A stretch of 64,000 bases of DNA from Octopus bimaculoides (GCF_001194135.2 NC_068982.1:169158714-169222713), one strand, 5' to 3'; positions 7,815-16,800 are shown, numbered from the stretch's first letter. Notes: a model not told the origin generated them from the sequence alone. A program made the numbers and translations.

Positions 7815-7891
7815 CAGCATCGCCTGGTGAAGAAATCAGAGATATAGGCAGAAAATGGGTTCCAACTGTGTCATCTTCATTCAAACGGTCC
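7815..7891 (-). CDS. MYOF: Ferlin C2C loop-3 exon, variant B (77 nt, (W)[25 protein letters not shown]+g)
   Basis: Acceptor ttttctttttttcctctaacacag; donor g|gtgatt; phase 2 to 1. Closer to the canonical DWDRL..nD.vGT of myoferlin/dysferlin. Confidence 0.92.
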
Positions 7892-10800
7892 CTGTGTTAG
7901 AGGAAAAAAAGAAAACAAAACAAAAAAACAAAACAATTATTAAGTATAAAAGCAGTCAGAAATAAGAATCTCAGAATTAAATGACAGATAAATTCAACCA
8001 GAATTCTTAAAATTCCTTGTTTGCTCTTATTTACCTAGAAATAACATCTAAAATTAGAGCTCATATATTAAATAATTACTTGCAATGAAATTGGATTTGT
8101 CAAATTGAATTGCTAAACTCTCACACATATACTATGGGGGATACATGATGATTCTATCATACCAGATCTATCAGAGATTTGATTAACAATAAATAATGAG
8201 AAATAATTTATAGAAAAACAAATCATTTAACTATGTAGTTTCAATGACTTCTAGATTAGGATGATATTAAAATATCTTTAAAAACCTCAAATCTTTCAAG
8301 GAGTTTTGATATTTGAATATACATAAAAATGTATACATCTATGCATGTGTGTATATATATATATATATATATATATATATATATAATAAAGTAAAGTTGT
8401 GGAATACCGTACGNNNNNNNNNNNNNNNNNNNNNNNNNNNNNNNNNNNNNNNNNNNNNNNNNNNNNNNNNNNNNNNNNNNNNNNNNNNNNNNNNNNNNNN
8501 NNNNNNNNNNNNNNNNNNNNNNNNNNNNNNNNNNNNNNNNNNNNNNNNNNNNNNNNNNNNNNNNNNNNNNNNNNNNNNNNNNNNNNNNNNNNNNNNNNNN
8601 NTATATATATATATATGTATATACACACACATACTGTATAAGGACACATATTTGTTCAACAGTAATCCCAGAATTCCTAGTAAAAACATAGTTCATAATC
8701 TAATTGAATTAATCATATTCACTCAAATATTGAATTCTTATAGTAATGAATGCATCTACATAGTTGGCTAACCTGTTAGAAATACCAACCAAATTTCCTT
8801 CCGATCACACACTACCATTCAAAAATGGAAAGATGGTACAGTAACAGCTTGAATGATTTTTACCAGAGGTCTTCTGAATCAGGACAGAACTATTTAAACA
8901 ATTGATTTCTACCAAAGGAATAAGTTCTTGATTTATTAGAGAAATGGAACTGTAATATATATATACATTCCACAAAGAATATTAGCAGATGAGAAATGAA
9001 ATCAGACAGACTCAGGACATTGTTGGCTTAGTTATATGCTATGGTACTCAATACTGTTAAAACTTCTATTTTGTTTTTTTTTATCAGCATTAGCAGTCAT
9101 AGTAGATAAACTCATAAATATAACAGAACTATGTGTTATGACCCTTAGAGCTGAGAACTTGTGTGACAAGACAATTAAAGACAACATACAGACTTGTGTG
9201 AATCTAACAGTGTATAAGTCAAACAAAAATGCCATATAATGCAAAATATAAGTATGTAAAAGTATAATCCAGTTCATCTTTTCAATAAAATTCAGCTACT
9301 TCAGATATTTTTGTGCTTTTTCATACCAACATTGTTGGAGTGTATGTGTGTGTGCATGCATGGGGGAAATAAAACAGTTTTAAAGGTAAGCATATGGATA
9401 CTTATGTCTAAATATCAAGAAATAAATTTTTTAAAAATAATTCTCATTTCGAGGGAAGACAATAGTCTGAAAAATATTTCTCGTAGCAATAGCTTATTGA
9501 GATTTTTCAACATTACTGGTTTAAAGGTGTGTTACTTTAATTTTACGCATTTCTTGTACCTCTTGTAACCAAGTAAATAAATTAGTTATGGAATTGATTG
9601 ACACTGGAGTACAAAAGAGAAAAACAGGAGTGTTGGGTGTTTTATATGAGAACAAACACTACTAATTAATACACCAATAAGACAGTATTAATCACAACTA
9701 TCATCAATGATTACTATTGGTGTTGTAGGTTAATAAATCATTGATAATTGCATGTAGGCTTTTCATTAAAGGCCGGTGGTGAATAGAGGTGACTGTGTGT
9801 GTGTGTGTGTGTGTGTGTGTGTGTGTGTGTGTGTGTGTGTGTGTGTGTGTGTGTGTGTGTGTGTGCGTGCGTGCGTGCGTGCGTGTGTGTGTGTGTGTAG
9901 GCATGGCTGTGTATTGGCACAGTAACATATGTAGAGTACAGGAGCATTTGTATGAGGGGGTACTGAAAAGTTCCTGGGTTTAGGTAAAAGAAAATACAGA
10001 AGGATCAGTTAATTATGATTTTAGTCAACATATTCCCCTCTCAGATTCACACACTTATTGCAGCATTCATTCAGGTTTTCTAAGCTCTACAAAAGAACTC
10101 GGAAGGTTGGGCCTCCAACCAGGCCTTTTGCAATATCCTTAGAGCCAGGAATTTTTCAGCCCACACCTGTAAGCTCAGGTGAGTTTATAGGCCTGGTGTA
10201 TGTGTATAAGCATGAGCTTATGCATGTGTGTGTTTGTAGACAAAGGTGTATGTATGTGTGTGTGTGTGTGTGTGTGTGTGTGTACGTGGAGAGGCAGCGG
10301 TATGTGTATGTAGGCATGTTTGTATGAAATTGTTTTCACACAAGAGAAGATTTTTTCCCCCTCTCAGACAGCACTAGGTAATGTTGTCATACAATTTCCA
10401 TCCATCTTTTTCTCTTATTGGAATGATTAGTAATTCAAGTTTTTTAAACATTCCATTGAAACAAGAAGACTATAAATAAATGCAGCTTGAACTACTAATA
10501 AAACAATTGTATGCCTAATGAACCAATGAAGGAGCCTCTACATGGTTGCTTGAGGAGTCAAATTTCCCTCCAACAACACCCTACAGTTTAAAAAAAGGTA
10601 GGACATATTGGATAATATAGTCCAGGGCACAGAGCCTGCAAAAGAATAAACAAAGACATTGCTATAGTATTAAAGCTTTTTTTTAACATCTCAGTCAGGT
10701 CTGACCCAGGGCCAAAATAATGACAACTACCTGTATAACTAACACATATGACTTGTATACGCACACACACACACGTGCTTTAAATTCAAAGAGCAAGAAA

Positions 10801-13800: not shown

Positions 13801-16800
13801 AAGAGAATTAAATACACTTAGTTAACTAACTCCCATTATGTTGATTGCAATTATTTTCCACTTTTAGTAATGTTAAAAGAGTGAGAAAAAATTATTTGGT
13901 AGTGAAAGTATGGCATTAAAAGAATACAGCTCATCTTGATGTGATATACATAGTACAAAAGAAATATAATTAGAAACCACACACACATATATATATATAT
14001 ACATATATATAATATATATATATTCTTTGACTCTGGATCAAATAAATGCAACCAGCAAGCAAAGCTTTTCAGATCCTGGAAATATTTGGCACCCTAAAGC
14101 ATAAATTGTTTTACAAAGAAATAGATGTCAAAGCCCTTTTGACAGGCTAATGGTCAATGAATTAAAATATCAGATTCGTCAAGTTTGTAGCAGAGTAGGC
14201 AATAGAAAAGTGCAAAAATAAACAGCAAGCATGGAAAAAATATTTTAGACAAAGAAAGGATTGTACTTTCTAAGTTAGACTGATTTATAATAGGTGAATT
14301 GGAAACAAATGAATGAAGAAATAATGAAGAGTTTATTAATTAGTTCTGATGGGGCAATGCTGGTACAGCACCATTTTATAAAATCAATATTGAAAAAGAG
14401 AATGAACTAGATTAGAGATATGTGTTGCCTAAAACAGATTAAAGAAAATACATGAAATACAGAACTTTTCCAGTTATAAAGCCAATGACAAAGTAAATTT
14501 ACAGAAAATCAACATCAAGTTTTTGTTTTTTAAAAGTAGTTAAGACTAAATTATCTTTTCTGTTAGTGTGACAAATATCCACATTTGAATGATAGCTATA
14601 TAGATGAAAATCAAAACAGAATGCTTGACGAAGAAAGACTGAAAAAATGTATGTGAATAGTTATTGAGAAACAATAGGAATAAAAACCCAAGATAAGGGT
14701 CACACATATAAAGGGTTTCTATTTTAGTATGACAGAGACTTTGATAGGGTATTCATTAGTAATTTGTTTTATTTGAGTTAAGAATAGGATTCTATGTTCA
14801 TAAAGAACAACGGAAGTGAGCAAATAGACTGCCGAGTTTAGTACGAACGAACTGAAATGATGGTATAGAAAACAATAATCAAGAAAGACGTCTTGTTCAG
14901 ATTAGTGTGCTTGTCATTATTTATCACACAAAGAGGCTGAGGGCAGCATGCAGTTAAAATAGTCTTTGAAGTTTAGTTTTTAATCACAGAAATAGCAAAA
15001 ATACTGGGAGGTATCAAGAGGTGTGGCGGGGTGAGGGGAATGTTGTAAATTGACCAACGAAAACTTTGAAAGGACAAACCGTTCTCTCCATTGGCAGAAA
15101 TAACGTTGGTGTTTAGAAAGGAGGAAGATATAACATCATCATTAGATACACGGTCCCTGAGAAATAGCAAATAAAGAATTCAAAGAATAAAACGAATGTT
15201 TGAACAGTTCAAATGATAAATTACGCAAAAGAGAATGAATCTAGGTTGTTTTATGTTAATAAATTATTATGCATATTATTTCTATATATGATATATGTAA
15301 CAAGATTTACTATTAATAAGGTTTTGATCGAGTTTAAAATGTAATTTCCTGAGAAAATTTAAAATTAAATCATAAACTGTTTCAAAATATTTCTGAATCC
15401 TATTCATTCTGACTGTAATGACTTAAATATTTTAGGGTTATAGTAATCAACATGTTTTCTAAGACTAACAAATGTAGTTTCTAAGTATCTCTAAATAACA
15501 TTCATCATCATCATCATCATCATCATTGTTTAGCATCCGTTTTCCATGCTGGCATGGATTGGGCAGTTTGACTGAGGTCTGGAGAGCCAGTGGCTGCACC
15601 AGGCTCCAATCTTATCTGGCAATATTTTTACAGCTGGATGCCTTTCCTAATGTCAACCACTCTGAGAGTGTAGTGGGTGTTTTTTACGTGCCACTGGCAC
15701 AATAGTGATTAATTCAGAAATAAACAAATTTATTTTGATGTGATTATGTAATAGCTCAAAATTCTTGAAACTATTTTCAGAGATCATATTAAAAATGTGA
15801 GGTTCTAAATTGAATTATCAAGTCATACATATAGTGGATTTAGAGTATATAAAAAAAAGCATGCAATCCACCCGACCATTAATGTATGATAACAGCTAAG
15901 TACAAGAACCATCAGATGAGACTTTTTGCTGTAAATGATCAATGTTTAACTGAAAATGATGTGAGGAAAAAAAAAAATGTCATTAAGACTTCAGAATAAT
16001 TAATTAACAAATCTTTTCTATAAGAGAGCATTGCAAGGANNNNNNNNNNNNNNNNNNNNNNNNNNNNNNNNNNNNNNNNNNNNNNNNNNNNNNNNNNNNN
16101 NNNNNNNNNNNNNNNNNNNNNNNNNNNNNNNNNNNNNNNNNNNNNNNNNNNNNNNNNNNNNNNNNNNNNNNNNNNNNNNNNNNNNNNNNNNNNNNNNNNN
16201 NNNNNNNNNNNNNNNNNNNNNNNNNNNNNNNNNNNNNNNNNNNNNNNNNNNNNNNNNNNNNNNNNNNNNNNNNNNNNNNNNNNNNNNNNNNNNNNNNNNN
16301 NNNNNNNNNNNNNNNNNNNNNNNNNNNNNNNNNNNNNNNNAAAAAAAAAAAAAAAAAAAAAAACAACCTCAATTAGAAACATTCTCTCATTTCAATAGCA
16401 ATATTATAATCTGTTAATTTATTTTTTTTTTAATTTCAAGTAGTATCAAAAGTAAAATTAACACTTGCCTAATTTTGTAACAGTTGTAAAATAAGATGGA
16501 AATCTAAAATGTTCCCAATTGTATAATATATGAAATAAAATGTATATCAGCAGCTGAGATTAAGACATAACATATCCATTCATTCATTAAACTTTTCAGG
16601 TAAAAATTTTAAGATAAAAAGATTTGAAGCCAAAGAGATTTAAGAAAAACAGATTAACAGATAAAAAGGCTTAGGATAAAATGGTTTGAAAACAAAGAGA
16701 TTTGAGAATATAAGGATTAAAAGATAAAATGATTTGAAGTTAATAAAATTTAATGATTAAAAAATTTAAGGATAAAAGGATTTGAACTTAAAAAGACTGA

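Follow-up and report, generated by a model that had tools for sequence, protein, structure and literature searches.

Ferlin exons in the window

The DNA analyzed here, referred to as the window, is a 64,000-nucleotide (nt) stretch of the Octopus bimaculoides genome (GCF_001194135.2 NC_068982.1:169158714-169222713). Its minus strand carries part of a ferlin gene, and the region of that gene encoding the C2C domain contains two homologous 77-nt exons, termed A and B, which an earlier interpretation of the DNA (the sequence-only reading) had proposed to be a mutually exclusive pair exchanging Ca2+-binding loop 3. Ten ferlin exons were located between 63.1 kb and 7.8 kb of the window. They are listed below in the order of the gene, with a slash marking exon borders.

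62917..63130, minus strand: linker exon between C2A and C2B, with an acidic run; taken from the list of open reading frames (ORFs); 3' end at 62917 (CAG/gttatt); matched by the linker that gastropod transcripts P0005 and P0162 encode
40188..40382, minus strand: C2B exon 1 (...ELIEFQ); tblastn with P0005 at 70% identity, borders cag/ATT and CAG/gtaaaa, Pfam C2
37704..37754, minus strand: C2B exon 2; tblastn with P0005 and splice borders
33976..34122, minus strand: C2B exon 3, running into the FerI motif (...LGPGDESP); tblastn with P0005, Pfam FerI at 43 bits
22273..22355, minus strand: C2C exon 1; tblastn and alignment to the C2C domain of myoferlin/dysferlin
20514..20617, minus strand: C2C exon 2, loop 1; tblastn and C2C alignment
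19727..19795, minus strand: C2C exon 3; tblastn and C2C alignment
19040..19083, minus strand: C2C exon 4, which encodes the first Asp of loop 3 and ends in TG, two of the three Trp-codon bases; donor TG/gtatgt
15080..15156, minus strand: variant exon A, 77 nt; good polypyrimidine tract, weak donor G/gtttgt
7815..7891, minus strand: variant exon B, 77 nt; canonical-looking copy, donor G/gtgatt

The identity of the gene, and the placement of the exon pair at loop 3 of its C2C domain, were borne out by structure and domain searches. A PDB sequence search over C2C returned myoferlin (9h6x, E 1.2e-37), dysferlin (9qls, 1.1e-36) and otoferlin (3.9e-22), with generic C2 domains at 1e-5 or weaker. Pfam recognized two C2 stretches and FerI (43 bits against a cut-off of 28) in both isoforms, the C2 score being 101.5 bits with A and 106.3 bits with B, a drop of about 5 bits. 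The exon order along the gene is C2B-FerI-C2C. Judged by these matches, the gene is a type I, dysferlin/myoferlin-type ferlin, of which the window holds a part. The window ends before the last third of C2C, and the FerA/FerB and DysF domains and the C-terminal transmembrane helix would map downstream of B. The GFLPTFG exon, which the sequence-only reading had named as the next one, is absent from the window; its place must be past position 1 or, with lower likelihood, within the assembly gap at 4505-4727.

Both variant exons have a polypyrimidine tract and AG/GT borders, and neither contains a stop codon. Exon A reads cag/G GAC CGT...GAG AAC G/gtttgt (15156 to 15080) and exon B reads cag/G GAC CGT...GAT GCT G/gtgatt (7891 to 7815). 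The upstream exon ends at 19040 with ...AAG GAT TG/gtatgt, and the Trp codon is assembled from its TG and the first G of A or B, giving an in-frame ...KDW/DR... with either copy. The two exons, separated by an intron of 7.2 kb, are identical at 37 of 77 nt and at 9 of 25 encoded residues. In a scan of all 127,852 six-frame 25-residue windows of the 64-kb stretch, A and B scored 50 against each other, the next-best windows reaching 25 against A and 23 against B, over a background of about -30 ± 10.6. When human myoferlin and dysferlin were used as the reference, A and B scored 49-57 and the next-best windows 19-31. The same scan found no third copy of the 77-nt exon in the window. A chance ORF was rejected as an origin for A, which stands about 7.7 standard deviations over the six-frame background when scored against B. 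Haplotype duplication was also rejected, as 52% of the bases differ between A and B. The minus-strand readings and the six-frame scan agree with the sequence-only reading in showing two stop-free 77-nt exons of the same phase with homologous peptides, and these comparisons show A and B to be genuinely homologous, with frame, length and splice sites preserved in both.

Codon-position conservation of exon A

To assess constraint on A, identities were counted separately for each codon position. At positions 1, 2 and 3, A matches B at 11, 16 and 8 of 25 codons, and matches the single B-like exon of locus L004 (described below) at 12, 17 and 7 of 25. Third positions are thus near the random expectation of 0.26, and second positions are 64-68% identical. 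If second positions had decayed like third positions (p = 0.32), 16 or more identities would arise with a probability of 0.001. Because both copies are equally old since the duplication, a neutral A would be randomized at all three positions and would carry insertions or deletions (indels). Exon A aligns over 25 codons without a gap and without a stop, and the codon-position pattern therefore points to selection on A at the protein level.

Similarity to outgroups was scored against six distant ferlins, namely human MYOF, human DYSF and those of Limulus, Branchiostoma, Lytechinus and Saccoglossus. The mean BLOSUM62 score was 51.8 for A and 66.5 for B. Single-copy obligatory exons of other taxa gave means of 33.8-65.5, a range that includes A. 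On both lines of evidence exon A looks selected, in favor of the earlier view that A is maintained rather than decaying.

Residues exchanged at loop 3

The greater part of C2C loop 3 comes from the variant exon, which continues through the next beta-strand into the beginning of the following loop. In myoferlin structures reported in 2025, C2C loop 3 binds three Ca2+ ions and phosphatidylserine and so provides the chief Ca2+-dependent contact between the ferlin ring and the membrane (PMC12264198). In the structure that cryo-EM gave for membrane-bound myoferlin the three Ca2+ ions are bound by D444, the W445 carbonyl, D446, T449 and D452, and R447, L448 and K450 contact the bilayer (PMC12264198). 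We aligned the octopus sequence KDW-DRLNEDD onto myoferlin D444-W-D446-R447-L448-T449-K450-N451-D452, which places D446, R447, L448, T449, K450 and D452 within exon positions 1-7. The loop-3 D-x-D-x5-D motif reads D-W-D-R-x-x-x-D-D in both isoforms, with the Asp ligand positions (exon positions 1 and 7) kept in A and B. The sequence-only reading was correct that both variants retain the loop aspartates, with the restriction that the exon supplies only the second and third of them, the first (in KDW) being encoded by the constitutive upstream exon. Its remark on the usual Gly, which B retains, means little, since Ala occupies that position in dysferlin and several invertebrate ferlins.

The differences between the isoforms fall at the loop tip (exon positions 3-5), which is V-S-N in A and L-N-E in B. 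At the equivalent of L448, which inserts into the membrane in human myoferlin, A has Val and B has Leu. The equivalent of T449, which in the human protein ligates the third Ca2+, is Ser in A and Asn in B, and the equivalent of the lipid-contacting K450 is Asn in A and Glu in B. Isoform B is one charge more acidic than A. Because these three positions differ, the isoforms would be expected to differ in the Ca2+ and/or acidic-lipid dependence of membrane docking. The tuning of Ca2+/lipid sensitivity between tissues that the sequence-only reading suggested is a hypothesis.

The variant exon in other species

Ferlin loci and transcripts of other species were searched for counterparts of the variant exon. 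Locus L003, on an invertebrate long-read contig of 2.4 Mb with no Ns, has three tandem copies after the FPSMCERIKLQMFDW exon; these are 77, 80 and 77 nt long, all with AG/GT borders and in the same phase. In locus L012, on another invertebrate long-read contig free of Ns, the FPSMCERIKLQMFDW exon is followed by two or more tandem copies before the locus ends. Locus L004 has one B-like copy and ends 266 nt upstream of it, and loci L008, L009 and L016 end short of the variant exon. Exon B is closest to the terminal L003 copy (v3), L004 and Saccoglossus, at 16 of 25 residues each. Exon A is closest to the single exons of other taxa (12-13 of 25) and not to the extra copies of L003 or L012, and no clearly A-like exon in another species was found among the best 150 hits of an exhaustive HMMER search. 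Among the sequence collections searched there was no cephalopod protein or transcript and no exact match to nine ORFs of the window; a first protein word-index search with the C2C peptide returned only two irrelevant fragments.

Two gastropod transcripts bear on the use of the exon. In a transcript of Hua sp. (L001, Logan SRR32835202), ...IKDW is joined exactly to GYLPTFGP at the exon borders, around 1465-1475, and the 77-nt exon is skipped. This transcript is frameshifted after ...IKDW, giving a truncated ORF of 467 amino acids followed by an ORF of 835 amino acids in another frame. In a Turritella transcript the upstream exon is spliced to a single copy (DRINEDDAICTGFLPLNAVAAPGEQ), after which an intron beginning gtttgt is retained.

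In exon identity, the distance of L003 and L012 from the window is similar to that of gastropods (caenogastropods), and the cluster would therefore be either old or repeatedly arisen. Between L003 and L012 the variant exons show no DNA-level alignment, whereas the constitutive exons are 72-90% identical; no conserved intronic blocks were found between these two loci. In L003, copies of an inverted repeat resembling a miniature inverted-repeat transposable element (MITE) occur at 12252-12516 (before variant exon 1), 14948-15203 (between exons 1 and 2) and 18950-19207 (after exon 3).

The donor sites of the variant exons were then compared at the following positions.

Window: 15074-15079 and 7809-7814
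L003: 14676-14681, 15701-15706 and 18425-18430
L012: 18877-18882 and 20240-20245
L002: about 1583-1588

A T at donor position +3, which is rare, is present in each of the four non-terminal copies (A, L003 v1, L003 v2 and L012 v1; gtttgt or gttggt), whereas the donors of the seven copies that are terminal or single read gtga or gtat. The split of 4/4 versus 0/7 gives a Fisher P of about 0.003, and the expressed Turritella exon also has T at +3. This division may reflect either shared ancestry or a convergent need for weak donors, the latter fitting a choice in which B would be the default and A would depend on an activator. We tentatively raise the idea, which we consider possible although on balance doubtful, that type I ferlins of spiralians contain an old system of two exon types rather than a duplication private to the octopus lineage. 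It would consist of a weak-donor "alpha" type (GTTKGT: A, L003 v1 and v2, L012 v1 and the Turritella exon), re-duplicated and diversified, and a strong-donor "beta" type (GTGA: B, L003 v3 and L004). Such a system, if true, would amount to a splicing-chosen repertoire of Ca2+/phosphatidylserine-binding C2C loops on the main Ca2+-dependent membrane anchor.

Frame and splice choice

Since 77 is not a multiple of 3, the copies cannot be combined freely. An mRNA including both A and B reads ...GENGTV and then a TGA stop four codons into B, which confirms the prediction that double inclusion breaks the frame. By this junction and by the frameshifted Hua transcript, only mRNAs with exactly one of the two exons keep the ferlin reading frame, and those with A+B or with neither would be removed by nonsense-mediated decay. 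The arrangement we propose is a loop-3 exon of 77 nt that was duplicated in tandem, with one copy presumably used per mRNA. The choice would be made at the splice sites, the weak GTTTGT donor of A probably needing an activator and B serving as the default. Steric and U12-type mechanisms do not apply, because the A-B intron is 7.2 kb long and the splice sites are GT-AG.

Copies of a repeat resembling a short interspersed nuclear element (SINE) lie in opposite orientation on the two sides of the variant exons, at 15513-15699 upstream of A and at 3672-3855, 2006-2065 and 914-968 downstream of B, with 107 nt at 87% complementarity. They could pair in the pre-mRNA and loop out both variant exons, or they may mean nothing.

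Alternative explanations

A real mutually exclusive exon pair is, in our estimate, the best explanation for the locus, with a probability of about 0.7. Several points weigh against it. The inclusion of A and the mutual exclusivity were inferred from sequence, and a biochemical difference between the isoforms is pure inference. Four other taxa (L005-7, L010, L011, L013-15) have a single copy of the exon, and in L003 and L012 the extra copies evolve fast, which could also be read as relaxed constraint. No docking/selector RNA pairing was found in inverted-repeat scans, which gave only SINE, MITE and microsatellite pairs, the downstream intron being incomplete in the window. Finally, exon A is carried on a 7.4-kb contig (8602-16039) isolated by a gap at each end, so that its placement rests on scaffolding. 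The two gaps are as follows.

8414..8601: assembly gap in the A-B intron, (TA)n microsatellite on both flanks; crossed by no reading frame
16040..16340: assembly gap in the intron from C2C exon 4 to A, poly(A) flanks

These gaps, together with the occurrence of several ferlin paralogues in animals, would allow the A contig to derive from a paralogous ferlin and to have been scaffolded into the intron by mistake. For such an artefact, however, the contig would have had to be joined into just the homologous intron, with both its order and its orientation correct, and we hold it to be very unlikely. True tandem clusters occupy the homologous position in the gap-free long-read contigs of two species, the gap flanks are of the microsatellite and poly(A) kind that usually causes local gaps, and the 52% difference between A and B excludes a collapsed or duplicated haplotype. 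A different possibility is that A survives unused as a remnant of an ancient tandem duplication, only B ever being spliced in. It is suggested by the more canonical character of B, evident in its higher mean score and its closer matches to L003 v3, L004 and Saccoglossus, by the weak donor of A and by the reliance on genomic sequence for the use of A. Against this stands the fact that third positions are saturated, yet A has acquired no stop or indel, its AG/GT borders are intact and its second positions are conserved; it is also as ferlin-like as obligatory exons elsewhere, and extra copies with the same properties exist in two other genomes. We regard a pseudo-exon as improbable on this evidence.

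Exon A might also be a regulated "poison" exon, included together with B for the sake of the premature stop, so that ferlin output is lowered and A is never translated in place of B. The TGA encountered in B after A+B joining would serve this purpose, and the gastropod skip transcript shows that unproductive splicing occurs at the exon site. A poison exon has no need of coding homology, yet A keeps the loop-3 aspartates and the F-L and I-S-x-x-G positions, and its conservation in the order of codon positions 2 > 1 > 3 argues for translation in the ferlin frame, making this explanation very unlikely. The remaining alternative accepts an exclusive pair and holds that the two proteins are biochemically equivalent, both copies having been kept through expression partitioned by tissue or stage. 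The retention of every Ca2+-ligand Asp in both copies is consistent with equivalence, as is the wide variation of loop-tip positions 3-5 among functional ferlins. The change of charge at the membrane-contacting K450 position, the change at the T449 position that binds the third Ca2+ and the strong diversification of the extra copies in L003 and L012 speak for a functional difference, and we consider equivalence unlikely, though a realistic prospect.

Relation to known alternative exons

Full-text searches of the literature turned up no account of mutually exclusive exons within the C2 domain of a ferlin. The general arrangement is familiar from genes of exocytosis and Ca2+ signalling, as in exons 5a/5b of SNAP-25 and exon pairs of CaV and NaV channels, in which equal-length, tandem, homologous exons are used one per mRNA and swap a functional surface. 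Those pairs belong to other gene families and their expression and function have been demonstrated, whereas the ferlin pair is known from sequence. With three copies, L003 resembles Dscam-type clusters in having more than two variant exons. Dscam-type clusters differ in relying on docking/selector complementarity; none was found at the ferlin locus, where the introns are long and filled with repeats. In DYSF, the alternative exons 1 and 1a reportedly replace part of C2A (C2A versus C2Av1) and change its Ca2+ dependence. These are promoter-driven alternative first exons acting on C2A and not C2C, in contrast to tandem internal exons enforced by the reading frame.

The homologous 3' exons of OTOF encode its transmembrane end. 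In the human gene they are tandem-duplicated coding exons, and they were the sole ferlin tandem-exon substitution that the literature search returned (PMC8373072). Unlike A and B, they are terminal 3' coding exons and encode no C2 domain. The same source illustrates the SCN2A pair (PMC8373072). Exon 17 of human DYSF and MYOF (beta6-7 of C2C) is the closest in location, as it represents regulated splicing within the same domain as A and B. The vertebrate insert starts right after the residues homologous to the end of A and B (...SAPGGE/insert/GFLPTFGP) (PMC9333456). It differs in being a cassette insert placed away from the Ca2+ site, which brings no homologous replacement and leaves loop 3 unchanged.

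The ferlin pair very probably extends a familiar class, that of alternative exons which arise by duplication and are enforced by the reading frame, and its site is a loop of central functional importance. If the exclusive use of A and B is true, a ferlin would be counted among the few genes of the fusion machinery whose diversity comes from mutually exclusive exons. A splice switch of the loop tip alone, recurrent in invertebrates, would also provide a natural experiment on how the loop tip controls Ca2+/lipid thresholds in ferlin-mediated fusion or repair. Gene models are easily broken at such a site, either by missing an exon or by including both copies.

Other features of the window

The intron between the linker exon and C2B exon 1 contains an open frame of 111 amino acids at 52626-52961 (minus strand), which has neither a Pfam match nor a counterpart in the gastropod transcripts and may be due to chance or be an alternative linker exon specific to the lineage. 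Transposon-like ORFs were found in ferlin introns at 48094-48814 and 28632-28922 (both minus strand). One of them is a PHD-finger ORF (Pfam, 30 bits), and the other (WFQQDGAPP...), which has no Pfam match, resembles the C-terminal part of mariner-type transposases. At 4207-4504 a satellite repeated in tandem about every 62 nt borders on the gap at 4505-4727, which has a (TA)n run on its other side. The 10-N gap at 39171-39180 has the same sequence of about 52 nt (gattgcggttttgattccccgactgcgcgttgtgagtgtttattgagcgaaaa) on each flank and gives the appearance of two overlapping contigs left unmerged, an artificial duplication.

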